Below, piece by piece: positions 2,911 through 61,988 of a stretch of DNA of 64,000 nucleotides. The stretch lies in contig NC_088858.1 of NCBI RefSeq assembly GCF_963853765.1, positions 22,630,001 through 22,694,000 on the forward strand. The letters are read 5' to 3'. The notes below the pieces were generated by a model, which saw nothing but the letters and a program-made list of their open reading frames with translations, did no database searches and was not told where the DNA came from. Origin of the DNA: Magallana gigas. Its lineage: Eukaryota. The translations under genes and the position numbers were made by a program. Numbering within the stretch: the first letter of the stretch is position 1; every line of letters begins with the position of its first letter.

Positions 2911-4731
2911 TCAATCTTGCTTACTTCTTACCAATCGTAGGAAGAAGTTGTACAAGAGACTGTTGGACTGCAAGAGATCTTGCAGACAGCTTGAAGTTTT
3001 CTCATACAAGTTCAAGATTGTGATATTCTTAAAGCAACAACTTGTTAATGGATATGCAAGAGTATCACTTCTTGCAATAATTATAACAACATGGACAGCA
3101 ACAGTCGTATCTGAAAACACGCTTTTCACAACATTCAAGGCTTGACCAATTCGTTCTCCTCTTAGAGTAGCACCTGTTGCCACTTGAACAAGATACAGCA
3201 CTGAGTTTTTGCAGGGCCGTAGCTTCTTGGCAGGAGAGCATACTTCTGTTTCATCCATTCTGATCGTAACATATACAAAGTAATCCATTCCCAGGAAATC
3301 TTGGATCTCTGGGTATACAACAAACTTGTCTACTGAAGTAGCAAGTTCTTTAAGATATAACGCAACCCTGAACAAACTTTTGTAATGACTGTTTAGACTT
3401 GTAGGAACATCTTTTGCAAAATGTTCTATTCTCTGTTGATCTGGGTGGAAAAATCTCTGGGAAGGAATTCGCAGAAGAAGCCAATCATCAGACTTAGTTT
3501 GTGGAACATCAAGAGGAGTTTCAGAAGGTTGATATGACGTTTCCATAGTATTGTATATTAAAGGCAGCAATACGATGCCTTTCTTCTCTTGGGCACTAAC
3601 TAACAATTTAATGAACTCCCTTTTTGCACTATTTTGTAACATCACTGTGAAAATCTTGTCACTATAACCTTTTTGTAAGACCATATCTAGCCTGTATGGC
3701 AATCTGGCCCTCCACTCAGGAGCTAGGTAGGCTTGAAGGTGATGCACCTTAACAACCACATCTCCTTCCTGTACTCCTAGTTCAAAGATTTTGGCATTGT
3801 TTTCTATATCCTCCTGCATTACAGTGTAAAGATCTGTATGAAAGATGTTGAAAGCTATCATTACTTGTCTAGCATCAGTTACTGTAAAGATGTATTCTCC
3901 TTCAACAGGGATATGTTGGAGCAAAATAGTGGTATGCAGTATAAATTTATCATAGACTGCACTGTTTCCAGTTCCCTTAAAGCTGGCTATTTCTTCTTGG
4001 ATTTCTTTGGTGTATTGTATCAAGGCTTGATGAACCGTTTTTCCAAACGCATACATGTACTCCAAGACATTGTGGAGTAATCTAGGAGTCATTATAAAAT
4101 GCTCCGAAAAAACATCATATGCCTCCTTCCCTGTCTTTGTGAGTCCTTCATCTTTACAGTTCAATACCTTCAAAGACCCACTCCAGATTTTCAGAAAGCA
4201 TTCTTCATCTAGTTGTAATTCTCTTCCACAGTCAATTTCACCATTGCTATAAGGAGTGGCAGTAAATCCTGCTGGAATCATAATAAATTTGATGTCTTTA
4301 CCCTCAAGGATGTTTCTGATTTTCTGTGTATAGTGGGTGTTGAAAATTGTTGTGTGGTCAATGATGAGACAATCCTCTGCTTGAAAATTCAAAGAAAAGG
4401 AGGAAAACTTATCTAAATGTTTATCCCTTACATCAATTTCATTGAGATCAACGTAATGAATCCTATGGTCTTTTCTTCTCCTGCACTCCAAAACAAAATA
4501 CAAAACCGAGGACGTTTTCCCAAGTCCTTGAATTCCTGAGACACAGTTCCATTGTTTCCTACACTTCCTGTAGAGACGGTCAATCACATTGATGAACACA
4601 TCATGGAATTTCGTTTTAATGAAGCACCTCCCAGCTTTAAAGTCGATGACATTGGCGAACAGTTTTGCCTCCTCATCTTCTGTAACACCTTGCAAAATAC
4701 TGCTTTCGAATTCATCCAAACTTCTTGGAAT
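2911..4731 (-). CDS. P-loop NTPase plus putative C-terminal restriction-endonuclease-fold protein (Crinkler/RHS-like architecture); 5' exon not found
   Basis: One long open exon (>600 codons). Walker A SGIQGLGKTS, Walker B-like CLIIDH, and C-terminal VVYPEIQDFLGMDYFVYV...LYLVQVATG. The track start at 4719 is TTG; an acceptor (ttttttag) at 4733-4732 opens the exon at 4731 in frame (IPRSLDEF). Confidence 0.7.
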   Translation of the reverse strand: MPRSLDEFESSILQGVTEDEEAKLFANVIDFKAGRCFIKTKFHDVFINVIDRLYRKCRKQWNCVSGIQGLGKTSSVLYFVLECRRRKDHRIHYVDLNEIDVRDKHLDKFSSFSLNFQAEDCLIIDHTTIFNTHYTQKIRNILEGKDIKFIMIPAGFTATPYSNGEIDCGRELQLDEECFLKIWSGSLKVLNCKDEGLTKTGKEAYDVFSEHFIMTPRLLHNVLEYMYAFGKTVHQALIQYTKEIQEEIASFKGTGNSAVYDKFILHTTILLQHIPVEGEYIFTVTDARQVMIAFNIFHTDLYTVMQEDIENNAKIFELGVQEGDVVVKVHHLQAYLAPEWRARLPYRLDMVLQKGYSDKIFTVMLQNSAKREFIKLLVSAQEKKGIVLLPLIYNTMETSYQPSETPLDVPQTKSDDWLLLRIPSQRFFHPDQQRIEHFAKDVPTSLNSHYKSLFRVALYLKELATSVDKFVVYPEIQDFLGMDYFVYVTIRMDETEVCSPAKKLRPCKNSVLYLVQVATGATLRGERIGQALNVVKSVFSDTTVAVHVVIIIARSDTLAYPLTSCCFKNITILNLYEKTSSCLQDLLQSNSLLYNFFLRLVRSKQD

Positions 4732-15000: not shown

Positions 15001-16295
15001 TCAGTCATTGAGTTCACATACTGAATAAAATCTGATTTTTTAATGTCTCAAGTTTTTTAGGAGTGTAAACAAATAATTTATCCAAACATATATATCATAA
15101 AGAGATAACTTGTCAGATTTCTGAAAACATGCAAAGTAACCTAAGTTTTTTTATATTATTTAATAGGAGCTAGAGACAATTCATAGTCAACAAAGTACTT
15201 ACAGATGAGTATGGGATGATTTGAAAAGATGCAAACATTTCTTTATATCTCTCAAATGTAAAAAATTTCACAGCTCGTTTGGGAGTTTCTGCCATCAATG
15301 GGGGTAGAATGCCTTTATAAAAAGAAAGAGCCCTGAAATAATCCAATAAACATGATTTATTACAAATTAAAGAAAACACCTATTCTTTCTTTACGATCAG
15401 TGTTAACCATAAGAAAATTAATGTCTCTTATTCAATATCATTTTAGAAAAAATATTCAAATATTTATAATAGTTTAGCATTATGTCAGTCAGAATTTGGA
15501 GATTTACAGAAAGCAATGATCCCAGCTTCATCAGAAACCTTAGTCAGAATAATAATGAGTTCTGTTAAACAACCTAATAATTTTACATCCACTGTTAAAC
15601 CTTAGATTGTTATCTCAAACTCCATGTGTCAGTACCAAGAAAAACTATAGAAATCACATTAGTGCAATATTTGAGATATTGATGAGATAATAATTTCAGA
15701 AACATTTACAATCATTGGAACTTCTAAACCACTTTGACATATCTATGGTATTTGTGATATCAGTGATTTAGATACCAAAATTCAACTGAATATTAAATAA
15801 TAATACATGTATATAAATAATGAGGCATTAATACCCTTCATTTCGGTACATCTTCTTGAAGCAGTCTGCCAATGACGTATACCGATTCGGATCATCTGGT
15901 CCCCTTTGGATTTGGAATCTCGTTTTCATTAGATCAAGTGGGTGCATCAGTGACACCTCCACAAAACCTGATACAAAGTAACCAACAAAAAAATTAAATA
16001 ATGAATCAAAACAAAAAATAACAGACCAATATAAATTCTAATAAAAATTCTACATATCGATAAAAATTATCTTAGCTTAAAGTATTACAAAACAATTATA
16101 TTTATATAGATCCTGGGTGATATCCCCACCTCATCTCTTCAGCAGTGTTTAGAAATTAGAATTTGTAAAATTATCCGGAAATCCATAAAAAAGGGGGGGG
16201 GGGTTACCTGCACATCCACCCGCTGCAAACTGCATAAAGTGGAGTTTCATTGGGCTGTGTCGGGAGCCACTTGAAGGCTCTACGACTGCTGCCAT
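12084..16295 (-). CDS. SLC25A21: Mitochondrial 2-oxodicarboxylate carrier (SLC25 family), 8 exons, ~306 aa
   Basis: Exons 16295-16208, 15967-15835, 15332-15203, 14201-14094, 13942-13778, 13519-13338, 12529-12477, 12145-12084, all GT-AG and in frame. Three carrier signatures (HPLDLMKTRFQ, NPFEVVKVKLQ, IPFDVAKSRIQ) plus YKGILPPLMAETPKRAVKFFTFERYK. Confidence 0.93.
12659..13183. mobile_element. Kolobok-like non-autonomous element with nested TA-flanked MITE (12678-12892) and tRNA-like internal segment (~12978-13047)
   Basis: ttaa|ggtggtat ... ataccacc|ttaa. Nested ta|ccgtatatc...gatattcgg|ta. Box A/B-like tagcgcattgg and gagttcgaatccc. Lies in SLC25A21 intron 6. Confidence 0.75.
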
Positions 16296-16749: not shown

Positions 16750-18206
16750 ATGTCGCTTGCCAACCTTTGCCAGAGATTTTCACGCATGATGACAACCACC
16801 AGCTTAAAAACAACACATAAATTTGTAACAAGTAGGTGTATTATGATCAATCTTTCAATCCATTTGTTATCATGACCATGACCTCCTTGTACAATGAAGA
16901 CAAAATTAATTCTATATTTTTGAACACTAGATCTCACTCTAGCCCTTGGTACCTGTGACAGTCTGACCGGCTCGATAGTTTGCGCCACAATTGCTCATTT
17001 TTGTAGCAATAACACTTTTAATATAGAGAATCAGGGTCTGAGGTCCTGTCCATTAATATCCTGTTATACATTTAAAAGTGGTGTTACCAACCCCTAGAAC
17101 TGATAGGTTAATTAACACCTGCCAGGGAAAAGAACTGATTGATGATCCTTGAGGGTAAAGACTGAAGGTTAGGAAACCAGTCTGGTCTTTCATTATTTCA
17201 TTTTAGTACATGTGTACTACAATTGAAGCTGTGATGAACCCCTGAAATTTACAGATTAATCACAAATCCTGACTGGGGAAAAAATTAGGGATGATAGTCC
17301 TTGAGGGCAAATGGGGAGGAATGTGACAGATTCAATGGCAGATACAGTACACAGGGTTATTTTCGCTCCGTGAAATTTTTGCCCTTGTACACTTACAGTT
17401 TTGCCCCATCTTGGATTTGCCCAGACATACGGTATTTGTATTTTAAATAGAGATCATTTAAGAATTTAGAATCGCCCTGTCTGTAAAACAGGGTCAAATT
17501 TTCCTCTCTATACAGCAAGTCAACTGGTAGAACACCTGACTAAGATTCAGGGGACCAGGCTTTGAATCGAAGTCTGGTCTGCCATAATTTCTCCTATCAA
17601 CTTACACATATATCAATTTGCCCATACCTGTGCATTGTGAGCGCTATAAATCACTCCCATAAACATTCAAATTAATATTTTATGAAAATTTCAATTGCTG
17701 GGGGTATTTTTCACTACTCGGCTTGAGTTTTTGATCGAAAGTGACAAAAGAAGAAGTTTTTTATGCACAAATTGAAACTAATTACTGAAATTTTTGTTCA
17801 TTCAGATTCTTCACCATTGGTGAACCATGCAGTAGAACCACGACCGGGAGGTTCCCTCATTTTACAGAGGTTTGAGACCCTTAATCAGATGCACAGACGA
17901 GGAGGCCCCATACAGCCCAAGATAAAGAAACCAAATAAATATCTGTGTGGCAATGCCTATAAAAGAGGTGTTGTATTGAAGCTTGTCATCAAAAAGCCAA
18001 AGAAACCCAATTCTGCTCAGCGAAAATGTGTGCGTTTAAAACTAAGCAATGGGAAAGAGGCGACTGCGTATATTCCAGGCGAGGGACATAATTTACAGGA
18101 ACACAGCATAGTGTTGGTGAGAGGAGGCCGACTTCAGGATGTACCTGGAGTAAACTTGCAGTGTGTTCGGGGGAAATATGACTTAGCACATGTCAAAAAG
18201 AAATGA
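16750..18206 (+). CDS. MRPS12: Mitochondrial ribosomal protein S12 (uS12m), ~160 aa
   Basis: Exons 16750-16831 ([17 protein letters not shown], transit-peptide-like) and 17806-18206, phase-compatible. Contains [54 protein letters not shown]. Confidence 0.95.
17343..17600. mobile_element. TA-type MITE (17343-17516) followed by a degenerate tRNA-derived SINE-like head (17517-17600)
   Basis: acagggttattttcgctccgtg ... ttttcctctctatacag, then tcaactggtagaacacctgactaagattcagg..ttgaatc. Confidence 0.5.
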
Positions 18207-35383: not shown

Positions 35384-37934
35384 TCAATAAGCTCCTATAA
35401 CATGTGTACAAGAAGCAGAAGCGCTTGCTGAAAGCGAGGCAACTTTTTAAAAAATTGTTACACTACCAGACATAGCGCCCATTGGATCCAAAGGATTTCC
35501 GCCTGGGGGCAGTCCGCCAGGCATCATGGGATTGGAGGCGGTCCCACTGCTACTATCTGCCAATGACAATAATGTTCAAAATATAAGTGGAAACTTTATA
35601 CATCTCTGTATATTTATCTTTATTTTTGAGAATATACAAAATGTACGAACCGCTCGTTCGTCCAGTGACAGATGACGATCCCGTCATAGTGTTCATCATG
35701 TTCATAGGACCGGAAGTCCCTCCTCCGGACCCCCCGGAAGACCCGCCCATCATTGATCCCATTGGATTAAACATGTTGGATCCACCACTTGTACTGCCCC
35801 CGCTGGCTCCACCGTTAACCTGACTGGCACCACTCATCATCCCAGGGGATCCACCCATTAGTGAGCTGGCGTCCATTTTATTGGGGTCACCTCCACCAGC
35901 ACCTTATGGAATTCGTGATCAGTGTATATTCAGTTCAAACATATATATTAAAAATGTTTTTTCATATTGAGCGTTCTTTAATTCGAAAAATTTTGATTTC
36001 CGCATTATTCTGCAATTACCAAGACTCGTTTGAAAAACTGTAGTCACTTTGCTACATATCTATAAATACATATTCTAATCATGTTGGAAAAAATCAATGT
36101 TAATAAGTAAAAAAAAAATTAAAAACGCCCACCTCCAAACATGTTCAGACTTGCGCCCTGTACTGCCATTTGAGTGTTTACTGCTCCAGGATCAAATACT
36201 CCTCCGCTTGCTAAAAAAACAACAACATATTCTTTACAGACTGCTTTAAAAAGACAACAATGTTCAGTCTTTTTTTTAACAATGTTGCACTTACAGCCCG
36301 ACTGGGGTCCCATGAAGTTTTGAACTTTTCCTGCAAGATAACAAAATAGTTTTTTGATTTTTTTTAGCATCATCATGTTAAAAGAACTCGATTGTGGTTG
36401 CCATTTTAAGACTTTATTGATCTCATTTAGAAGAAGATCTATGTATGAAAATCCCAAAATTAAAAAAGTTAAATACGAGTATATGAATTTATCTTTGCAT
36501 GGTATCACATTTATTTTCAAAACTCACGGATCAAAATATCCAAGTTTACAGTGTGTTGCAAGGTTAAAAATGCTTAATAAATACCTAACGTCGGGCTTAA
36601 AGGGTTGAATCCAGATTGTGTGGTCTCGACATTTGTTTTGATGGGATCAAACGACGGCACCGCGGCCCCACCACCGGAAGTCTGTGCTGATCCACTTCCC
36701 GAGCTGCTAGATCCGCCTTGTGTACTTGTAGGAGAGCCAAAAGAGCTTGCCCCTCCTTGTGTCGAACTTGCAGAACCAGTCGGACTGCCAAACGAAGTAG
36801 CACTACCGCTCCCAGAGGTCCCTGTTGAAGATCCCGTTTGACTACCAAAAGAGGAGGCGCTGCCACTTCCAGATGAACTCGTTCCAGATCCACTTGGGCT
36901 TCCAAACGAGGAAGCACTGCTGGTTCCTGTAGAACTTCCAGATGAAGATCCCGAGCCAGACGGACTTCCAAACGCCGACGCCCCACCTCCAGTACTAGAA
37001 CCTCCTTGAGTCATCGTGCCAGCGGATCCTGACTGCTGTGCGGTACCACTGCCGCTTGGCATGGTTCCCCCTCCCATGGACTGCTGTTGCGCGTTCATGC
37101 CCATCCCATTAGTAAACGTTGGAGCATTGCCCCCTGTTCCCTGTCCCGAGTTTGCTGCATTGGGGTCATATCCCCCTGCCATGTTTACTGCACCGTTATT
37201 GGGATTGTAACTCGGCGTTAATGAAGCAGACGACCCAGCCTGACCTCCTCCTCCCATTTGTGACATAGGATTGGTAAACTGAGCACCACCTTGTTGGTTG
37301 GGATTGAAACTGCCTCCAAAAGCAGACGTCCCCGATGTAGAGCTTGATCCACTGGTGCTTCCTGCCTGTTGTCCACTGGAGCCACTCGACTGTTGGGTTG
37401 ATCCTCCGCTACCCAGCTGGTTGGGATTGAAACCACCACCCAATCCGCTGGTGGAAGTCCCTGACGTGCTGCTCAGCTGATTGTTGAGCTTTGTGGGATC
37501 AAATGTTGCCGAGCTCCCGGATGTTTGCGACGAAGGTTGGCTGTTAGTCTGGGATCCCGGATTAAACATATTCATTCCGCTCCCCATACTGCTCATCATT
37601 TGGTTGGGATTAAACGATCCCATATACTGGGAGGTGCTCGAAGTACTACCTCCTCCTCCCCCTCCAAACATCATAGAGTTAGGATCAAAAGTTTGTCTTC
37701 TCGCTGCCGAATTTGCTTAAATCAAAGTACATGTACATTATTGTTAAAACTCTGCTTTGAAAACAAAACAATGAAACATGTTTATATAAACCGATGTCAA
37801 ACATCAGCGGGATTAGTTATGAAATGGATATTAAGAAACTTACCAGAAGCAAGTCTTCGGAATTCCAAAACATACCGGTTCGGTTCTGCTGATATGGAAT
37901 ATATCAATGTAAATAAAAGTACTTTTGGTAGCAT
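35384..37934 (-). CDS. Secreted Gly/Ser/Met-rich FDPN-repeat protein B (~560 aa); last exon uncertain
   Basis: Exons 37934-37844 (MLPKVLLFTLIYSISA signal), 37715-36585 (AARR|QTFDPN...), 36330-36295, 36210-36133, 35902-35651, 35556-35467, and probably 35394-35384 (GAY*). Confidence 0.75.
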
Positions 37935-39830
37935 TTTGCTTTTCTGTTAGTAAATAGGCTACGAGGAATTATAGAAGCGGTCACTCTAAACTCTAAGATA
38001 CATGGTAGATAAGGCATGTTACAGAATCACTTTATACCGTGTTTATAAATATATCGATAAAGTGTTGAGTTTCACGAACTACAAGTAAAGGCATTCTACT
38101 ATTATAGGACATTCTTTATTGATATTGAAATATCGTGAAACAAATATTATGTTAATGAGAATCTGTACAGTATTTAAGGTATATTTTCCAGACGATTTTG
38201 TGACAGTTTCCTCTCCGGAATTCAGCATAAGAAATAATTGCTGCAATTTGTTAAGATTCTGGCCAATATAACTAAAAATAAAGAGAGAGACTTTGTGCAT
38301 TAAAAATGGCAATGTGTAAAATAAACACTTGTTTCAAACCCAATACAATTTCATTTATGTGTTATGTGTATAGTAAGGGAACCAAGATCTGAAGTCGACC
38401 ATCGTCAACACCAATGACCAGGCACGCAAGTATCTTTATTGACCTTGGGTCAACTCTTTAAACATTTGTAGTTTTCATGAATATTAATACATGTAATTCT
38501 ATACCCAACAAGGGGAAATCAACATATTTTAGTTATAATATGATTTATGAAAACAAAGTTAATGCGGACGTTTATATATGCATGCGTAGGCATTAAAACG
38601 AATAGGGGATTTCCTTTAGGAAAGGATGAAGGAGCCAAATGGAAAAGGTCATGAATTATTCATGAGAACGAGAGAAATTCAATGAGTTGACCACCAGTCA
38701 ATAAGTGTGATCGAGACTGACCACTGACCTTTGACAATTGCTGTAGTCTATAGCATGTATGTGCAAAATAAGCTCTAAGGGGATGGACATCAACATACAA
38801 TTTAAAAAATCTCACCAGATGTTTAAATTATGTAGTAGAAATTATATTAAAATCAGTCAGCTAATTAATTCCCTCAAATGATAAAATACAATAATGGTAT
38901 ATACTGATAGTATTCTGATACCTTTTTATCGTATATATAATACTGCGCCATTTTGTTTGATATTGTTTTATCATGTCATATCACTCTTAAGTAATAGTCC
39001 TTGCTCGCGTCACAGATTTCCTTCTGATTTGCTCTATCTTGTCTAGTGAATACAGTTCACCTGTTTCTGTGCTGGTCACAAGAACACGTTCGGTCGAATA
39101 TTTCAATGATAAGTATGGTCTTATCTACTATCAGTATATTCTGCTATCGCGATAGGTGCGACAGATGTTAAGTGGAGGTCATTTGTATACAACCATGGAT
39201 TTTATAAGTCAGTGCGACTTATCAATGTCATGCTTATTTACTAGTATTTAGTATGACTATCTAAACAGCATTTATTCCCGAATCATATTGATAATCCAGG
39301 GAATTAGGAACATTTGTGATTGATTTATCAGATTAAAAAAAATCTTTATTTTTATGATTAGAATACTTGTAATCTTACAAGAACATGTACTCTATTTTTA
39401 AAAGTCTTATCGTTAACCCAAACACTCCATATCTCATTATTTCAACAAAAAATGTTTCAAATGTTATTCTTCAATAGGTAGTTTATTAATCCAGATGCTT
39501 CTTTAATCCAGATTATATCTCAATTAAAATAAAAGCTATCAGAATAACGATCCAATCTAAATTGTTCTTTTAAAAATTGGATTATCATGAAAGGAAACGA
39601 TTTCATGACGTGATTTTTTAAATGATTAATTTGGTATACAACTTTTGGCCTTTTTATTGAAAAATAACAATCAAAATACAATTCAAGCTGTAAAAGGTAC
39701 AATGTGGAAAAGAAAAAACAAATACCGGAAATTAATTGAACCAGTAACCAGCTTGAAGATACAAAGATATAATTTATTTTTCTTTTAAAACACATGGAAA
39801 ATTGTATATCGCTCGCTTATCCTTTTAAAT

Positions 39831-42276
39831 CTATCGCCGCCCAAGAAGATTTTGAGGATTAAAGAAGTTGAACGACAGGGTGTTAACTGCATCAGGATCG
39901 AATCCCCCGGCCGCCGAACCACCAGATCCAAGTTGTGCTTTGGAAGGGTCCAAAAAACTAGATTGGATTTGGTTAACTTTGTTTGGATCAAAAGAAGGCT
40001 GCTGTGCACTTCCACTGGAAGAGGAAGAAGATGATGAAGAGGATGAAGATGAGGACGGACTTCCGCCACTGGTCCCGGAACTACCGCCATTTAAAAATGC
40101 GCTCGGATTTATGAACATATCTGGACTCATCATTTGTGATGATGCACCGGAAGTGCCACTTGAGCTGCCACTGGTTGATGACCCGGATGATGCACTACTT
40201 GAACCAGAAGTTGACGTTTGACGTTTTCTAATACCTGGAATATCGTTAAATGCTTGATAAGTATCATAAAGTACATGAATCAAACTCTGTTACAACGTAA
40301 ATTAGCAGATTTTTAAATTATATGTTATTCGTCGAGACCATGTACTAGTAATTAAGTTTTTTAATGCCATATATTCTTTTGAGAGCAAAATGAAAATTAC
40401 TCTTCTAGTTCTGAAAATAATTACAAATACTCACTTCTTCTCCCGACTTGAGCTTGTGGATTAAAGAAATTGAAAGACATGGTGTTAAACTGATCGGGAT
40501 CGAATCCTCCAGCTGCCCCACCACTTGCTCCAAGCTTTGAGGATGAAGGATCCAGCATGTTGGACTGGATTTTGTTAACGCTGTTGGGATCGAATTTGGG
40601 CGTACTACCACTACTACCACCTGAACCACCACCACCACCGCCTCCTGACATCTGGTTGGGGTTGAAGAAGTTGAACTGCATGGTATTGAGTTGGTCTGGG
40701 TCAAAGCCCCCGGCAGCACCGTTGCTGGCTCCAAGTTTGGAAGAAGATGGATCGAGCATGTTAGCTGTCAGTTTGTTGACACTGTTTGGGTCGTAGCTTG
40801 GAGGACTGCTTCCACCACTGCTGCTGCTACTTCCGCTGCCGCTTGGCCCGGATGGTGAGCTTTGGCGTTTATGAATAACTAAAATATCAGTCATATAACT
40901 ATTTTATCAAAAATGCATCATCATCATCATCATCGTCGTCGTCATCGCTGCACAACGGTCTAGGTTCAAAGATATATTTTCTTACCTCTTTTTCCAACTT
41001 GAGCTTGTGGGTTAAAGAAATTGAAAGACATGGTGTTAAACTGATCGGGATCGAATCCTCCTGCAGCCCCTCCGCTTGCTCCGAGCTTTGAGGATGAAGG
41101 ATCCAGCATGTTTGACTGGATTTTGTTAACGCTGTTGGGATCGAATTTGGGCGTACTACCACTGCTACCACCTGAACCACCACCACCACCACCACCACCG
41201 CCTCCTGACATCTGGTTGGGGTTGAAGAAGTTGAATTGCATGGTATTGAACTGGTCTGGGTCGAAGCCTCCGGCAGCACCGTTGCTGGCTCCAAGTTTGG
41301 AAGAGGATGGATCGAGCATATTAGCTGTCAGTTTGTTGACACTGTTTGGGTCATAGCTTGGAGGGCTGCTTCCACCACTGCTGCTACTTCCACCGCTTGA
41401 AGTCTGTCGTCTTTCTTTAAATTGAAGATGACGAAAATCGATACAATTAAACGAATCAAAGCGTTGTTAACATACAGTATAAAAACTTGAAAACACTAAC
41501 TTCTTCCTGATGGACCACTATTTCCACCATTACTCAAGAGAGCGCTGGGGTTGAAGAAGCTGAAGGCCATGCTGTTAACCTGGTCGGGGTCGAATCCCCC
41601 TCCTCCTCCGCCAGATTGGCCAAGCTGAAGCTTGGAGGGATCTAAGAAGCTAGCATGAATGTTGTTGACCTTGTTAGGGTCGAATGATGGAATTAATGAA
41701 CCACTGCTGCTTGAAGATGGTGATGATGAACCACCACTACTACTGGACCCACCACTCATGGTGCTGCTGGATCCACCACCACTTGGGTTTGAAGGGGAGG
41801 ATCTAAAATATCGTGAATTTCTTTTACATACAAATGATAAATGAAAAAAACCAAATGTAGTGAACTATTTCTTAGATTAAAGAATGTGGATTAAGGTGGG
41901 AAAGATATGTACATACGCACTTGAGCCACTCATGAACTGTGAGGGGTTGAGCAAGAATGATGGTGGCTGCATGTTTTGTGAGAGTTGTTGACTAGAACCG
42001 GATCCGCCACTTGATGTGCTTGTACTTCCGCCAGTTCCGCTACTGCTTGACCCGGAACTAGTGCCACTAGTTCCGGTGCTAGTACTTCCTGTTTGTGTTT
42101 GGCGGACTGTAACATTACGAACAAAATTGGGAAATATCCTCATAGTAAATATATTTATTTTGAATCCTTTAATAACGAATTTTAATACGGGACCGAAATA
42201 GGACCTTACCTCTGAGATATCGAGCATTTCCGCCCGTAGAAATGACTGCCACGACGAGGATGACAGACAGCCACAT
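39831..42276 (-). CDS. Secreted Gly/Ser-rich FDPN-repeat polyprotein D (~611 aa, four modules)
   Basis: Exons 42276-42210 (MWLSVILVVAVISTGGNA signal), 42106-41917, 41802-41501, 41414-40986, 40878-40435, 40234-39831. Junctions read LRVR|QTQ, SGRKRR|QTS, VGKR-VIHKR|QSS and VGRR-SIRKR|QTS. Ends LLGRR*. Confidence 0.88.
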
Positions 42277-42657
42277 AGTACACCTGACTCTGATGGCTGT
42301 GTTTTGTCAGTATTTGTTATTGTTAATTCGATAGTTCGAACCTACAATTCCGTAATGATCACGTAATGATGATAAATTGTGGTCAATCTAACGATTCTAC
42401 TGTTTCAAGAAATAGTACGAGATCTTATCTTCAGTAGCTCACGAGGTTGTGATAAGAGCCACTGTCCAGTTAGGGTGCTGGACAGGTGAACGATAGAACA
42501 CGGTAAATGGTCTGATGTATCTGGTGGTCAGTGGTTATACCAGCCAAGATTTACATTGCCATAGAAATAGGGAATTTTTACAACATTGAAACAATGACGA
42601 ATGTACAGACTTGTCAAAATTTCATGTTTTCTCATTCTTGTGATGGTTAAAGACAAA

Positions 42658-43117
42658 GTTAAATTAATCTGTGTCGTATCAGTTAATTCTTTAGTCTGAC
42701 ACTATGTTTTCCTATTTAACAACTGCTATTCATTTTTAAAATTAAGCTTCAGTAAAAATCATTTGGTCACAAATTTCTTAGAATTTAGCTTGTAAAAACA
42801 ATCAATTGTAAAATAAACTGTAAAAGCAGGAATAGGTTTTGATGATAAAATTTCGTTCTTTATAAATCGAAAATTGATATTGCATGTTAAATTAATCTGT
42901 GTCGTATCAGTTAATTCTTTAGTCTGACACTATGTTTTCCTATTTAACAACTGCTATTCATTTTTAAAATTAAGCTTCAGTAAAAATCATTTGGTCACAA
43001 ATTTCTTAGAATTTAGCTTGTAAAAACAATCAATTGTAAAATAAACTGTAAAAGCAGGAATAGGTTTTGATGATAAAATTTCGTTCTTTATAAATCGAAA
43101 ATTGATATTGCATGTTA
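42658..43117. repeat. 228-bp perfect tandem duplication
   Basis: gttaaattaatctgtgtcgtatcag...attgatattgcat starts at 42658 and again at 42886. Confidence 0.9.
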
Positions 43118-43474
43118 TAAGAAATGTTGTGTTTTAAACAAAAAAAATCAACTACAATATTATAACAATTCACATCACAAACAAAAGTTTATCACGACGA
43201 AAATTCTGCTTCTTCAGTATCTACTATATAGTATATGGAAAACTACTAGTATTTTCTAACATTCACTCACATTTAGTCATTGCCATTGCTTCTGTTTCTC
43301 TGTCGAAATTCTTGACGATGAACAATTTCGATGGGCTTATTTCTTGAAGGATTAAAACATCGGAATGTTTAAAATAAGAAGACAATTATTTCATGTAGTA
43401 TTAATTAAAAATTAAATAATATCACACTCAATAACTCCTAACGTTTTTATATCAGAACAAGAACGCTTTACAAA

Positions 43475-46400
43475 TTAATGATTGTTTAATAACAGCTGAA
43501 ACCACGACTCATTAGTCCCTTCCATTCCTTTGCTATTTTCCAACAACACATTTACACCCTCCAGTAGACCAGATGTGGGGGCTGACTTAAATCGACCCTT
43601 TGTCCGGGGGCTGTCAGATTGAACAATTCCGCCTGGGAGGCTCATTTTGGCGTTATTAACGTTATTAGGATTAAACAAAGTCGACGCCTTGGTTGGCGCA
43701 GCAGTTGTATTGGTCGTCTGGTTGTTATTTGTTTGAGGGACCACTTGGTTGTTTACTCCGATTGGAGCAAAGTGCATGTGAGCATTGTTTACGGAGTCCG
43801 GATTGAATATTGGTATTTCATTCTTGTTTCCGCCACCGAGCAGACCAGGCACGAACCCTGAACCCCCATTAGATGTGGAGCTATTGGTAACGTTATCAGC
43901 CGCAGACGACGGCGCTCCATTAATATTTTGCAAGAAAGACGGTTTAAAATGCATCTGCATATTGTTGATGTGGTTGGGGTTAAACTTGTACGCCAATGCT
44001 TTGTCCGCGTCGTAGCCAGGGTTTTTCTCCAACATCTCGCTTGGATTGAAATGCATTTGCACCTTGTTTACTTCATTCGGATTAAAAACGGCATTGTTGA
44101 CCGATGATGGATCGAAACTGCCACTATATCCCGACATGTCAAATCCCATTCCCATTCCAAAGTGACCTCCTGCACCTGCAGTCTTATTTTCATTTTTTGA
44201 ATTTATCATTGTTTGCATCATTCCTTGATTGATACTATTCGGGTTGAAATTACCGACAAAAGCCGACTCATACCCGGATACGGTACCTGCAGTGAAAGAA
44301 TGGCTGCTATTGTCGTTGTTTTTGGCAAACGGGTTTTGAATCGCCATGATGTTAGTTTTCATAGGATCGTAACCCCCAGTAAAAGCTTGACCCCCAAACG
44401 ACTGGGATTTTCCATCAATTCCTAGCTGAGAGTTGATGTCAAAACTCATCTTTGCGTTGTTCACTTGAGAAGGATTAAATCCAAGATATGCATACTTGTT
44501 TTCTGTAGAGTTCGGGTTCACTTGTTGTTGTTGTTGTGAGTTGTACTGAAATGACCCCATGTTCATCCCTGGCAACGTGCCTGGGTTATACATGATCGGC
44601 TTGTTTATTGCATCAGGATCAAAACCCGAGTAAGATACGACCATCTCCGATGGCGTCGTAGTTTGCATCGTCTGGTCGGTTGAAGATACAGTCGGTGCAA
44701 TGGTCGTGTGGACAGTCACGTTCTTGGCAGAGACATTTGACGAAGAACCATTTTGATCATCGTCTGCTTCCAGTTCTATCAAATCATAAAATGATCGTCT
44801 TTGTTTTGTATTTTGTGCTTCTGTACTTCTGTCTGCACTATTTTGAGTTTGCGTCTTTGAATATTGAGACAAAGGGCCTAAGAAAAGATCGGGACTAAAC
44901 CCCATTGCTGCAGTGTTAAAAGCAGTGTTAAATGGCTTTTGAAATCCAGATTTCTTTGCTCCTTGGTTAGCTTGCGGTTGATTTTGCATCGTATGCTTAC
45001 CGCTACCGGAAAGTCCCATCAGCTGTTGATTAATTGCATTAGCATCGAATTGCGGTTGTTGAGAATTGCCCAACTTGGAAGTAGAAACAGACGCAAACTG
45101 ACCTGGATGGAATGATCCTTGCAAAATGTTCAGTCTATCTGGATCAAAACTAAGTTTTATATTCATATTGGAAAGTTTGGAGTTAGGTAAAATCATACTG
45201 TTCGGGATGAAATTCATTTTCGCAGATAAAGCGGAGTTTTGAATCGCGTTTGACGAAGTCGTTTGTGTTGAGGATTGACTATTCTTTTGATCTAACATGC
45301 TTGACGTCTGGGAATTTGAGGGATTTTGGTTCCCAGCCGGTGCCTGACTAAACTTGTGCATAATTCCCGCATACCCAGTTGGTCTGTTTGCATATCTCGT
45401 CCACTCATCAGCAGATATGAAGTTTTGACCAACGTTGTACTTCGTCGGATTGAAGCCATTTGTACTCGTCCAAGAGCTCATTAAGCGATTGGGGTCAAAA
45501 CGAGATACCTCTGCAGTATTGCTTACTTGATTTTCGTTTGGTAGAATATACTGGGTTTTACCTACATTGCCACCCCCGGATGAACTCATCCCTGCGGATA
45601 ACATGGACATAGGGTTTGTGTTGAGCTGAGCAGAATTGTACGTATTCATAGAATTCCCACTGTGTACTGCTTGGCTTCCAGTGAAACTTGGATTAGAATT
45701 TCCATTATTCTGCTGAAATTTTACTTCATTTGTAAACGTTTGTTTTGCGGGCATGGGTCCTTTGGCTTCATTGGTTAATGAAATTTTATTTCCTGATTTG
45801 TTGATTTCATAACCATTTTGCGATGCCATATTATTATTGTTTTCTGTCATTTGCAAAGTATTAAGGTGTGGAGTTTGTCGACTTGTATCAGTTGCATGGT
45901 TTTCATTAAGGTTAGAATTGCTTTGTTCAAGATAATTTGGTTTCAATCTTGTTTCCATTCCATCGGAACCAATGTTTAAAGGCATTGTCGACTGACTCTC
46001 TTGTTTCTCCCCTACATACGGAAGCACATGTTTTCTGGGAATTGTAACGGTTTTTACCTCTTGAATTTTAGAGACCTCTTCCTTTGAATTGGGCAAGGCT
46101 AACGCCTTGTTTAACAATTCTAGCAGCTCGACACCATTCATATGTTTTAACATTGTTAAAAGTGTAGCCGAATCTTGACCCTCCGCCATCTTAGTAATGG
46201 GTTTTTGATCAGCTTCATTCCTATGTTTGCCTTTATCTGTCATTGAATTAAAATCAGCGCCCCCTCTGATAAAATTCTGAATGGCCGCTTCTGTCGGTAT
46301 TTTTGGTTTCTTGACATAATATTCAGAGGAAAGTTCTTCCAATCCGGGTAGTGGAATGCTCTTGGTTACTGCAAAAATTCAATTACACCCAATATCCATT

Positions 46401-46587
46401 AATCTCTTTGAAGTTAAAAATAGGCATTGCGCGAAAAAAATTTAAATATCAGTTTTTTTCATGAATAGTAAAACAAAATACATGTAACATTTTTTTATGG
46501 AGTAATCCTGTTTAAAAAATCATTACGCCAAATTTTTAACTCACTTGTGACAACAGCGAAAATAACGAAAACTCGAGCGAAATCCAT
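43475..46587 (-). CDS. Large secreted Asn/Gln/Ser-rich FNPN/FDPN-repeat protein E (~978 aa)
   Basis: Exon 46587-46545 (MDFARVFVIFAVVT, phase 1) plus exon 46368-43475. Internal KQRR|SF and many F[DN]P[NSD] motifs. Confidence 0.85.
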
Positions 46588-46935
46588 TGAGTGGAAGAGA
46601 AAATACAGAAAATAAATAGGAATGTTCACATTTGCCGACAGCCGTTGGATAGAGTCATTTTGATGACGATGGGTCGGCTGCCATTATCTGCTGATGATAC
46701 CAAGTTCTGATAAACAGTACATTGGAGCACGCGTTCGTTTTACCACATGGCCTTTATCGTGCCATCACAATATCCGAAAACATACCTTGAGTTTCTATAA
46801 ACAATTGGAAGACATTTAATATGTATTTAGTATATCAAACAGAAGAATGATACAGAAGAATGTTTACTTTCAAAATCTACAATATCCAAAAAGTACTTCT
46901 TTTAAAATGTAAAACTTTTATACGATAAAACTCAA

Positions 46936-47084
46936 NNNNNNNNNNNNNNNNNNNNNNNNNNNNNNNNNNNNNNNNNNNNNNNNNNNNNNNNNNNNNNNNN
47001 NNNNNNNNNNNNNNNNNNNNNNNNNNNNNNNNNNNNNNNNNNNNNNNNNNNNNNNNNNNNNNNNNNNNNNNNNNNNNNNNNNNN
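46936..47084. other. Assembly gap (N run)
   Basis: ~150 N characters. Confidence 0.99.
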
Positions 47085-48410
47085 ACATTTGGTCTCAAAA
47101 CTGATCATCATAGTCTTGTTCCTTTGATCCAATTTAAATTTTGAATATTATTGTTGGAATCGCAAGCTTATTGAAGACAAAATATCATGTTAGAGTTGTT
47201 CGTCTATAGTCAGCGTATAATAGAGGAGTGAATGTGCGAGTCATATTTTAAACTAGATTGAATAAATTATATTCCCTATTTGAATTTTAATAAAAGTGTT
47301 TTGATTTAGATATATGATATAAAAACACCACACTGTTGTTTTGATCTCATCCTTGGTATTTATTTGTGAAACACTTTACAGAAACAAGAAATATCGAACA
47401 ATAACTGAGGTATAGTGACTCATTATTAACATATTGTTTGTTAAATAGGACTAAAAATATGTATGAAATCAAATACGGACGTTCCTCCGACCACTTTTCT
47501 AGTAAAAGGAAAATTTATTGGCATCAAACCAAAGCCAATCGAATATTCTCCTAACCCTTCTATTGTAGAATTGCATACAAAAAATTGAATTCTCCCCTTG
47601 TTGCCAAGCGCGGATCATCAGATCAAATTCGACCGCGCTGCACATCTCCTTTGATCTTATGATCCGCGCCTGGTAACTCTTTGAAGATGTTAGACTTAAA
47701 GTCTAAAGTATGTGTTTGTTTAAGTCTTAAAATAGTTTTAAATTTCATTTTTTTTAATTTTAAATTTTTCCTTCTGGATAAATTTTTGGCCATTTCATAA
47801 GTGCATTGCACGGGACATGCTAATAGCCACAAAAATTCTGAACGATTATTCACGCAAACCACAGGAGATAGTTTTTAGCATTAAGTTTTCATATATTTAT
47901 GATAATCCTCTTAATATTCATATTAATAGTATTGTAAAATGTTTAATTTTTAATTTGAGTAGACTTTATTTCATTTTAATTAAATTTACATGCATTTGAA
48001 TAACAAGTGACCGGAAAAATGACCACAGTTTATGCACAAAATAGAAAACAACATCTTTTTATGATATGAACCGATTTTAATTTTATTTCATGTATAAAGT
48101 TCATGAAAGGGTCGACTAGAATGAACATAAAAAAGTGGTCAGAAAATACCGGTTCTAGCTTAGACTCTTTTTGATCATGGACGTGTGTGAAATAATTAGT
48201 GTCCGTTAAACTGTCAAAAACACAACAAACTTCTTTAGCTTGCAGCGGATAAATCAGTCATTTACACTTCCAAATGTCTGAAAATCCGGAAAATACCGGA
48301 AACATGGCTATAGGGGCATGTAACTTTGACAATGACTATGACCGGCACATAGGCGTTATAAATAAATAGAAATGATAAGGTTGCGCTCCCAAACCAAGCG
48401 CGATTGTGAT

Positions 48411-61134: not shown

Positions 61135-61988
61135 TTAAATATTATATGTTCTTCTTTTCCTTTTTCCAACTAGAAATGCACCGGGATTTAGAAATTGTGA
61201 GGGTTGGAAAAAATTCGTTGAAAATGAAGTTCCACCAGGCGAAGTGCTTCCGCTTCCGGTCTGTTGCTGAAATTGGTTCCCGCTTTGTTGATTGGTTGTG
61301 ATCCCTCCATTCAAATTCAGGTTTTGAAAATTATTGAAAATTCCCAGAGATAAGAAAAGATTTGGTTTACTCAAGTTCCCAGGTTTTTGGAGTTGGTTAG
61401 TACTGGTAATTCCATTTGCAGTTATAGACGATCCAGAACCCAAATTTGAAAATTGTGAATTTCCAAGATTTAGAACAGGAGAAGGGTCGATTAAGTTTTG
61501 CTGAAAAGACCCGGATGAACCATTGATTCCGGACGAAGCTCCTCCAACCGATGACTGAAAACTCGGATCAATGATCTGCTGAGGCATCGGTGCAGAATTT
61601 CCGGTTCCTCCTCCACCATTTCCGGAATTGAAGAACGAGGAAGAGCTGTCTGTCTGACGAAGAATTCTGAGAATGTCTGGAATAAGAATTTAAAAAGTCA
61701 TATTTCTCTCTTTATCGGGAATATGCACGTGTTTCTTATGAATGTACATTTTAACTTTTACCTACAATGTATATAAAAAAATCCATTAGGTATGTTGTCA
61801 TGATCGTTCACTACTACATTTACATCAAGTCCGAATCGTTTTAGGTCAAGTTTCTAAGACAAATGACCAAATCATTGCGGAAACTAAAAAAAAAAGACAG
61901 GAAACAATATCTCACCCGTTTTTCCAGCAGTGAATGTTAAATTCGTAAGAAGACCGATGAAAACAAACAACTGAAAGAAAGGAATCAT
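61135..61988 (-). CDS. Secreted Ser/Asn/Gln/Gly-rich protein J (~204 aa)
   Basis: Exon 61988-61916 (MIPFFQLFVFIGLLTNLTFTAGKT, phase 1) plus exon 61676-61135 (DILRILR|QTDSSS...FLNPGAFLV-GKRKRR-TYNI*). Confidence 0.85.

Follow-up and report, generated by a model that had tools for sequence, protein, structure and literature searches.

A cluster of oyster genes encodes secreted, arginine-free Ser/Gly-rich proteins whose units are bounded, in at least four bivalve orders, by the sequence signals that normally mark hormone precursors for cutting, N-terminal pyroglutamate (pGlu) formation and C-terminal amidation. These signals are real and conserved, whereas the processing itself and the role of the proteins are inferred from sequence alone. 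The cluster occupies positions 32-62 kb of the window, which is the complete stretch of 64,000 nucleotides analyzed here from Magallana gigas (GCF_963853765.1, contig NC_088858.1, positions 22,630,001 to 22,694,000), and comprises secreted low-complexity genes designated A, B, D, E, F, G, H, I and J. No additional cluster members were found within 30 kb on either side, and no paralogues of the D or G units were found elsewhere in the genome. The features that bear on the analysis are as follows, with a slash marking each predicted cut.

36584..37934, minus strand: gene B, first two coding exons, 37934-37844 (signal peptide plus start of propeptide) and 37715-36584. The N-terminus reads signal peptide, a propeptide of about 21 aa ending AARR, then QTFDPN (site at 37690-37707). 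The transcript splices on from 36584 to further exons below 36520, and the model stops short of the C-terminus.
39831..42276, minus strand: gene D, a six-exon polyprotein of 611 aa, with coding exons 42276-42210, 42106-41917, 41802-41501, 41414-40986, 40878-40435 and 40234-39831 (stop included). The layout is signal peptide, RYLRVR/Q unit 1 (160 aa) S-GRKRR/Q unit 2 (137 aa) V-GKR-VIHKR/Q unit 3 (140 aa) V-GRR-SIRKR/Q unit 4 (126 aa) L-GRR-stop. LRVR/QT spans the junction of 42210 with 42106, and GRKRR/QT spans the junction of 41501 with 41414.
40436..40624, minus strand: one copy of the conserved module of about 55 aa that ends every D unit, with the consensus P-x-[FY]-D-P-N-x-V-N, then L-D-P-S-x-x-x-L-G, then [FY]-[DN]-P-D-x-x-N, then F-x-F-F-N-P-x-x-x-x-Gly-basic-basic.
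43475..46587, minus strand: gene E, a large paralogue of more than 950 aa with many [FY][DN]Pxx[VIL]N repeats, a predicted signal-peptide exon at 46587-46545 and a main exon from 46368. It has no basic-Gln or Gly-basic code and a normal Arg content (15 Arg), and serves as internal control and synteny anchor.
46936..47084, no strand: assembly gap (N run), intergenic, between the 5' ends of the divergent genes E and F.
48411..50324, plus strand: gene F (114 aa, predicted model), exons 48411-48462, 48805-48960 and 50188-50324. The signal peptide is followed directly by APFDPN, with no basic-Gln site, and the protein ends F-GKK-stop (50310-50324).
51432..52108, plus strand: gene G (145 aa, predicted model), exons 51432-51477 and 51717-52108, with signal peptide, NPIKR/QS (51722-51736), a 122-aa chain, then F-GKK-stop (52094-52108).
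58040..60021, minus strand: gene I (548 aa, predicted model), exons 60021-59967 and 59631-58040, with signal peptide, GFALR/QS (59612-59626), a 518-aa Ser/Gly/Met/Gln-rich chain, I-GRKR (58052-58066), then the tail FVQ and stop.
61135..61988, minus strand: gene J (204 aa, predicted model), exons 61988-61916 and 61676-61135, with signal peptide, GKTDILRILR/QT (61651-61665), a 163-aa chain, V-GKRKRR (61150-61170), then the tail TYNI and stop.

The original prediction listed eight sites with Gln after a basic residue (AARR/QT in B; LRVR/QT, RKRR/QT, HKR/QS and RKR/QT in D; IKR/QS in G; ALR/QS in I; ILR/QT in J) and eight ends with Gly before a basic run (S-GRKRR, V-GKR, V-GRR and L-GRR-stop in D; F-GKK-stop in F and G; I-GRKR in I; V-GKRKRR in J). 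This observation is confirmed, as all 16 sites are present. Thirteen were found directly by six-frame translation, whereas the other three (LRVR/QT, S-GRKRR and RKRR/QT) appear only after splicing. That splicing is confirmed by GT..AG joints in transcript-like Logan contigs of three runs from three studies, which define D and the start of B (including the joint of 37715 with 37844 and the loose end at 36584), and by the spliced translation, in which D carries all eight of its sites. Each gene modeled (B, D-G, I and J) has a hydrophobic signal-peptide exon, judged by eye, followed by a phase-1 intron; those of B and D are RNA-supported, and that of E, with its phase-1 junction, is predicted. 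Units 2-4 of D are encoded by one symmetric phase-1 exon each, and the exon junction falls between the C-site of one unit and the N-site of the next.

Certain artifacts can mimic such a pattern, and these were considered first. Many sites sit at the very start or end of open frames, and GGTAAG splice donors can be read as Gly-Lys, just as CAG acceptors can be read as Gln. However, the Gln codons are mostly CAA and each lies 11-20 nt inside its exon, F-GKK and L-GRR are followed by true stop codons, and V-GKR and V-GRR lie just upstream of real donors (GTAAGA and GTGAGT). Chance matching in low-complexity sequence is also excluded. Over the six precursor models (2,029 aa), 5 strict [KR]RQ[ST] and 8 G[KR][KR] motifs were observed, against shuffle means of 0.02 and 0.41, and none of 20,000 shuffles reached the observed counts. 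The sites are paralogous and therefore are not eight independent events, such that their conservation in distant bivalves is the stronger argument. Misassembly around the gap was likewise rejected. The gap lies between gene E, on the minus strand with its ATG at 46587, and gene F, on the plus strand with its ATG at 48411; both flanks are AT-rich with no long open frame, and none of the sites is within 3 kb. An artifactual origin is thus refuted.

Conservation of the sites in orthologues had been proposed beforehand as a test, and the motifs are retained. D-like genes lie beside the E orthologue in three other species. In Saccostrea echinata the N-sites are VR/QT, RR/QA, KR/QS and RRR/QT and the ends are S-GRR, V-GKR, V-GKR and L-GR-stop. 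In Argopecten irradians the N-sites are RR/QT, KR/QT, TR/QT and KR/QS and the ends are V-GRR, L-GRR, L-GRR and G-GR, whereas in Mytilus trossulus RR/QT is found with the ends A-GRR and L-GKR. Homologues of E were found in oysters, Argopecten and Mytilus. Profile hits in Mizuhopecten and the unionid Potamilus, and in a marine metatranscriptome record, show the same ends. About 19 of 20 N-boundaries have Gln, and in the module alignment every sequence that reaches the boundary, 23 of 23, has Gly directly before the first basic residue. These residues are kept across Ostreida, Pectinida, Mytilida and Unionida, while the Ser/Gly linkers between them change freely.

Similar evidence comes from the other genes of the cluster. 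The RR/QT site of B is kept in Saccostrea. For F, the F-GKK-stop end is kept in Saccostrea, with a -F-GK end in Mytilus, and the Saccostrea orthologue of G has VKR/Q and F-GRK-stop. Both sites of J are kept in eight congeneric-level homologues, whereas the tails after its conserved V-GKRKRR are short and variable (TYNI, THNI, ALYL, A). A homologue search for gene I returned nothing, probably because of low complexity. The pattern is not universal, since F lacks the N-site, a scallop G-like gene has RRRR/T and L-GKKK-stop, and one metatranscriptome sequence also departs from Gln (Thr or Asp is found instead in these two sequences). All eight N-sites and eight C-sites fit the general convertase form [R/K]-Xn-[R/K] with n = 0, 2, 4 or 6, although some N-sites are weak: LRVR/Q in D is not dibasic, and ALR/Q in I is neither dibasic nor preceded by a basic residue once the signal peptide is gone.

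The composition of the proteins follows the same boundaries. Every Arg sits in a signal peptide, a propeptide or a boundary, and all 14 Arg of D lie at its five boundaries. The predicted mature chains contain no Arg, no Cys and no adjacent basic pair in 1,830 residues here, and 13 unit cores from four species contain no Arg in 1,607 residues, with the D units of the window counted in both sets. The neighbors E and H, which are taken to be unprocessed, have ordinary Arg contents of 15 and 11. This confinement of Arg could also suit uncleaved proteins in which the clusters serve as cationic patches within an otherwise neutral or acidic chain, for example to bind polyanions, chitin or mineral, or to drive coacervation. 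This possibility seems quite unlikely, as it does not explain the invariant Gly before and Gln after the clusters, their placement at the extreme C-terminus or right after the signal peptide, or the variable tails beyond them, and the clusters all match the rule [R/K]-Xn-R.

Another doubtful alternative is that convertases cut at these sites but the flanking Gly and Gln remain unmodified, being kept for flexibility at the cleavage site or as part of the repeat. Gly and Gln are common in these proteins, at 19.6% and 7.4%, so a Gly before a basic run is less surprising than in an average protein, and support for the modifications comes from sequence only. However, the local context of the invariant Gly (QAQV-G, QNLL-G, QSQL-G) is not Gly-rich, and ends such as Gly-Lys-Lys-stop and Gly-Arg-Arg-stop need no endoproteolysis and are hard to explain except as amidation signals. 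An N-terminal Gln cyclizes readily in the secretory pathway.

The best explanation, held with a probability of roughly 0.6, is that the region is a bivalve-restricted cluster of genes for secreted, cysteine-free and arginine-free Ser/Gly/Asn/Gln-rich proteins studded with aromatic-Asp/Asn-Pro-Asn motifs. In this view, B, D, G, I and J are made as pre-pro-proteins, with D as a four-unit polyprotein. After signal peptide removal, a subtilisin-like proprotein convertase would cut after Arg at the [R/K]-Xn-R sites, removing a short N-terminal propeptide and separating the units. A carboxypeptidase would trim the basic residues, PAM would convert the exposed C-terminal Gly to an amide, and the new N-terminal Gln would cyclize to pyroglutamate. 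F and G would need only the trimming and amidation steps at their C-termini. The products would be uncharged-ended chains of 56 to 520 aa with no Arg, resistant to exopeptidases and poor substrates for trypsin-like enzymes. The gene models, the sites, their conservation and the exclusion of Arg are read directly from the sequence, whereas cleavage, both caps, the tissue of expression and any material role are inferences. The genome has the enzymatic capacity, with at least six loci carrying a convertase P domain and many carrying a PHM-type copper monooxygenase domain.

The interpretation offered in the original prediction is therefore only partly supported. Its reading of the motifs as a convertase, carboxypeptidase, PAM and glutaminyl cyclase code is strongly supported at the sequence and evolutionary level, and is considered here to be a genuine, selected code. 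Its estimate of products of 100-500 aa is correct (about 95-520 aa here). Its proposals of packaging in regulated secretory granules and of a biomaterial role have no evidence behind them at present. One polyA metatranscriptome run of the species had no reads on B or D, and run records did not reveal a tissue because their labels are coded and the Logan contigs give only SRR numbers. The weakest inference is that the products form a self-associating extracellular matrix or gel rather than act as signals. It rests on their length, their sticker-spacer low complexity, the well-covered transcripts and the long paralogues I, B and E.

A less likely alternative is that the same processing yields signaling molecules, such as long neuroendocrine, pheromone-like or settlement peptides, in which the module of about 55 aa is the active ligand and the Ser/Gly stretches are glycosylated spacers. 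The code is the classical prohormone one, the module is far better conserved than the linkers, and one scallop unit is only 56 aa with no linker, which is comparable to doubly capped hormones such as crustacean CHH. The metatranscriptome hit is taken to come from a plankton (Tara Oceans) sample, and so may be larval. Against this view, cluster mates I (518-aa product), B and E are long repetitive chains with the same motifs and no single compact module, and the oyster units carry two modules plus long linkers inside one product. The module was not in the supplementary files of a scallop neuropeptide survey, and searches by motif string returned no papers.

Searches with the module revealed few relatives. 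Its profile found only 30 proteins among 1.84 billion representatives. There was no Pfam hit above noise for B, D, G, I, J or the module, no PDB hit with E below 0.4 and no ESM Atlas hit, and an AF2 model from a 28-sequence alignment was uninformative (pLDDT 58, pTM 0.17). Literature searches on pGlu, amidation and convertases in oyster matrix proteins, ligament Met-rich proteins, PAM in mantle, crystalline-style proteomes and biomineral polyproteins found no paper describing this family or this code on long chains.

Some known systems provide useful comparisons. Multicopy neuropeptide and prohormone precursors, such as the molluscan FMRFamide-type and ELH precursors and the doubly capped 72-aa crustacean hyperglycaemic hormone, share a signal peptide, repeated units flanked by mono- or dibasic sites, Gly before the basic pair as amide donor, Gln as first residue, and short discarded spacers and tails. 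General rules for such precursors are available (PMC6425005; PMC5996578). The bivalve units differ in being 56-520 aa of low-complexity Ser/Gly/Asn/Gln sequence instead of 4-70 aa, in lacking Cys, and in showing no similarity to any catalogued neuropeptide family; the long cluster mates have the same repeats, and support for neuronal expression is lacking. Amidated polypeptides of over 100 aa have, as far as is known, not been documented.

Structural or carrier polyproteins cut by furin-like convertases, including profilaggrin, nematode polyprotein allergens (ABA-1 type), the diatom silaffin precursor Sil1p, and pearl-oyster Pif177 giving Pif97 and Pif80, also release tandem units of about 100-300 aa at basic sites from one secreted or stored precursor, and their products act in bulk, not as ligands. 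None of these is known to combine the cut with a Gly amide donor and an N-terminal Gln on every unit, and there is no sequence similarity. Bivalve ligament and shell matrix proteins (LMP, abductin, Met-rich insoluble proteins) are likewise bivalve-specific, secreted and of Gly/Met/Ser-rich low complexity (PMC13080008; PMC7591529), a resemblance judged from composition (Gly, Ser, Met) alone; gene I has 8% Met. N-terminal pGlu is documented on the shell and ligament peptides LICP and Prismalin-14 (PMC13080008). Where searched, these papers report no basic-site processing, with amidation looked for only in PMC13080008, and the [FY][DN]Pxx[VIL]N motif and the 55-aa module are not mentioned in any searchable paper.

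A more speculative possibility, to be held only tentatively, is that bivalves have recruited the neuroendocrine peptide-finishing machinery to make an extracellular material. Arg-free, Cys-free chains of up to about 520 aa, capped at both ends, would be protected from exopeptidases and nearly immune to trypsin-like enzymes, and would self-associate through regularly spaced aromatic-Asp-Pro-Asn stickers into a gel or fiber. Candidates are the crystalline style, hinge-ligament matrix, larval cement or mucus. These would be by far the longest amidated polypeptides known.

If the caps are real, amidation and pyroglutamylation are not confined to small signaling peptides, but can finish long structural or gel-forming polypeptides, which would be a new design principle for protease-resistant secreted materials. 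The total exclusion of Arg also carries a practical warning, since such Arg-free, Lys-poor chains would largely escape trypsin-based shell, ligament, mucus or style proteomes. The finding would also define an uncharacterized bivalve-restricted gene family, whose named representatives are all annotated as "hypothetical," with a conserved 55-aa module.

The window is AT-rich eukaryotic DNA. The 955-aa open frame of gene E (43475-46342, minus strand) has homologues only in bivalves, with 90-93% identity in some assemblies, about 52% in Saccostrea, and about 35% in Argopecten and Mytilus, and the window therefore comes from an oyster-like bivalve. The original prediction listed sixteen sites among the neighboring genes, eight with a basic site followed by Gln and eight with Gly followed by basic residues, and thirteen of these were found directly in frame at the expected places. 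Because nearly all of them sit at the edge of an open frame, the first possibility to be considered was that splice signals had been read as codons. This explanation is ruled out by the DNA. The acceptor AG lies 11-20 nt upstream of each Gln codon, and the Gln codon is usually CAA. Furthermore, F-GKK (in two genes) and L-GRR are followed by real stop codons, whereas V-GKR and V-GRR lie just before good donors.

Transcript-like contigs from three runs of three studies carry six GT..AG joints on the minus strand. When gene D is spliced accordingly, a single frame of 611 aa is obtained, and this frame contains the three sites that are not found in unspliced translation: LRVR/QT, S-GRKRR, and RKRR/QT (a slash within a motif marks the predicted cut). 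Thus, the sites are present as originally described, including those that depend on splicing. Chance occurrence can also be set aside, since shuffling of the six precursor models never reached the observed motif counts in 20,000 trials. Likewise, the assembly gap at 46936-47084 lies between the 5' ends of E (ATG at 46587, minus strand) and F (ATG at 48411, plus strand), is flanked by AT-rich sequence with no long open frame, and affects none of these conclusions.

The cluster (genes A, B, D, E, F, G, H, I, and J) spans 32-62 kb of the window, and no further member lies within 30 kb on either side. Genes B, D, E, F, G, I, and J each begin with a short exon encoding a hydrophobic signal peptide, followed by a phase-1 intron. 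Units 2, 3, and 4 of gene D are each one symmetric exon, and the exon junction falls exactly between the C-site of one unit and the N-site of the next. The layouts that follow the signal peptide, with the mature boundaries inferred from sequence alone, are as follows.

Gene D: RYLRVR; unit 1 (160 aa), then S-GRKRR; unit 2 (137 aa), then V-GKR-VIHKR; unit 3 (140 aa), then V-GRR-SIRKR; unit 4 (126 aa), then L-GRR and stop.
Gene G: NPIKR/QS, a 122-aa chain, F-GKK and stop.
Gene I: GFALR/QS, a 518-aa chain, I-GRKR, then FVQ.
Gene J: GKTDILRILR/QT, a 163-aa chain, V-GKRKRR, then TYNI.
Gene B: a propeptide of about 21 aa ending AARR, then QT; the gene continues into further exons.
Gene F: no N-site; ends F-GKK and stop.

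The remaining members and the spacers of the cluster have features of their own, as does the sequence outside it.

32217-32807, minus strand: gene A, the outermost cluster member, with FNPN, YNP, and FDPN motifs; it contains Arg.
52242-53120 plus about 53195-53341, minus strand: gene H, another apparently secreted protein inside the cluster, whose upstream exon reads MKMLIPLLAALILGLG; it is Tyr/Gln/Pro-rich with a normal Arg content, and has no [FY]DPN repeats, no processing code, and no convincing Pfam match.
42658-43117: a perfect (100%) tandem duplication of a 228-bp unit in the D-E intergenic spacer.
55401-55776 and 57314-57703: two arrays of about 18.5 copies of a 21-bp unit, in inverted orientation to each other and about 1.5 kb apart, between genes H and I; they create the long repetitive pseudo-ORFs (MVLYYMK and HHLHIIK types) on both strands, and may be the ends of a mobile element.
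17763-18206, plus strand: a 147-aa open frame that looks by eye like a mitochondrial ribosomal protein S12.
2911-4719, minus strand: a 602-aa intron-less open frame with no Pfam match.

The strongest new fact to emerge from this analysis is the exclusion of arginine. Every Arg in the proteins that carry the code lies in a signal peptide, a propeptide, or a boundary site. The predicted mature chains of the window (1,830 residues) have 0 Arg, 0 Cys, 21 isolated Lys, and no adjacent basic pair. The same holds for 13 unit cores (1,607 residues) from four species, although this set includes the window's own D units and the two totals therefore overlap. In contrast, cluster members without the code have ordinary Arg content, with 15 Arg in 956 residues for E and 11 in 293 for H. 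This is the pattern that selection against stray cleavage after Arg would produce.

Loss of the motifs in orthologues had been named beforehand as an outcome that would refute the idea, and this outcome did not occur. D-like genes sit next to the E orthologue in Saccostrea echinata, Argopecten irradians, and Mytilus trossulus. Each unit in these genes also starts with [KR]R or TR followed by Gln-Ser/Thr/Ala and ends with Gly followed by basic residues, while the Ser/Gly linker between them varies from 0 to about 150 residues. All units end in a conserved module of ~55 aa. The smallest unit of the family is found in Argopecten irradians (positions 16790-16975 of the retrieved locus, L002), where 56 residues run after TR from Gln to Leu, followed by GRR, with no Ser/Gly linker at all. 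This unit is therefore the bare conserved module, and Mizuhopecten has the same unit (profile hit P0014). D units 2 and 3 of the window (40436-40873 and 40987-41412) are 96% identical to each other, and the two corresponding Saccostrea units (15088-15528 and 15617-16072 of locus L001) are similarly alike. Each of these units contains two copies of the 55-aa module, only the second of which ends in a cleavage site, suggesting an old exon duplication that has been kept similar by concerted evolution or strong constraint.

A profile of the module found only 30 proteins among 1.84 billion representatives. The named ones are hypothetical proteins of Mizuhopecten and of the unionid Potamilus, plus a marine metatranscriptome record, and they show the same ends. 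The metatranscriptome record (P0017, source 'merc', accession ERR1711860_343652) is a scallop-like member of the family with a signal peptide, GRR/DT, and L-GKR-GLFRR/QS. The sample is presumed to be Tara Oceans plankton, and if so, this record hints at expression in planktonic larvae. When boundaries were counted by eye over these data, about 19 of 20 N-boundaries have Gln, and 23 of 23 C-boundaries have Gly directly before the first basic residue. The one N-boundary exception among the D-type units is RR/DT, whereas a scallop G-like gene that falls outside this count has RRRR/T. F and G orthologues keep Gly-basic-basic-stop in Saccostrea, and F-like or G-like genes keep Gly-Lys ends in Argopecten and Mytilus. 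Similarly, J homologues keep both sites, while the tail beyond the basic run drifts.

The most economical reading of these signals is the classical one, in which signal peptidase would act first, followed by convertase cleavage after Arg, carboxypeptidase trimming, PAM amidation of the residue before Gly, and cyclization of the new N-terminal Gln. The gene models, the sites, their conservation, and the absence of Arg can be read directly from the sequence data, but each of these chemical steps is inferred. The genome, a 564-Mb assembly, has several loci with convertase P domains and several with PHM-type copper monooxygenase domains, which demonstrates capacity only. Also, pGlu on bivalve matrix peptides has precedent in LICP and Prismalin-14 (PMC13080008).

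The role of the products might be that of a material or that of a signal, and the existing clues point in both directions. A material is favored by the length of the products, by their sticker-spacer composition (Ser 27%, Gly 20%, Asn 8.5%, Gln 7.4%, Phe 5.8%), by the long repetitive paralogues, and by the well-covered transcripts. A signaling role is favored by the compact, well-conserved module and by the existence of a scallop unit of only 56 aa. The module is not predicted to fold on its own (pLDDT 58). One polyA metatranscriptome run of the species had no reads on B or D, and thus expression is not ubiquitous.

As inferred from sequence, the system works like a multi-copy prohormone precursor and satisfies the sequence-level criteria of that family, whereas the family's biological criteria (small bioactive products and neuroendocrine expression) are doubtful or without supporting evidence at present. 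It also resembles structural polyproteins that are cut by furin-like enzymes, namely profilaggrin, nematode polyprotein allergens, silaffins, and Pif177, but none of these is known to couple every cut with an amide donor and an N-terminal Gln. For the module itself, searches of Pfam, PDB, Atlas, and the literature gave no match.

Overall, the sites that prompted this study are real. Their original interpretation is supported only in part, since the reading as a processing code is well supported by comparative evidence but has no biochemical backing, while the accompanying claims of granule packaging and a biomaterial role are plausible inferences only. Prohormone-type processing is itself an established scheme, and what is new here is the occurrence of its sequence code on an uncharacterized family of bivalve proteins.
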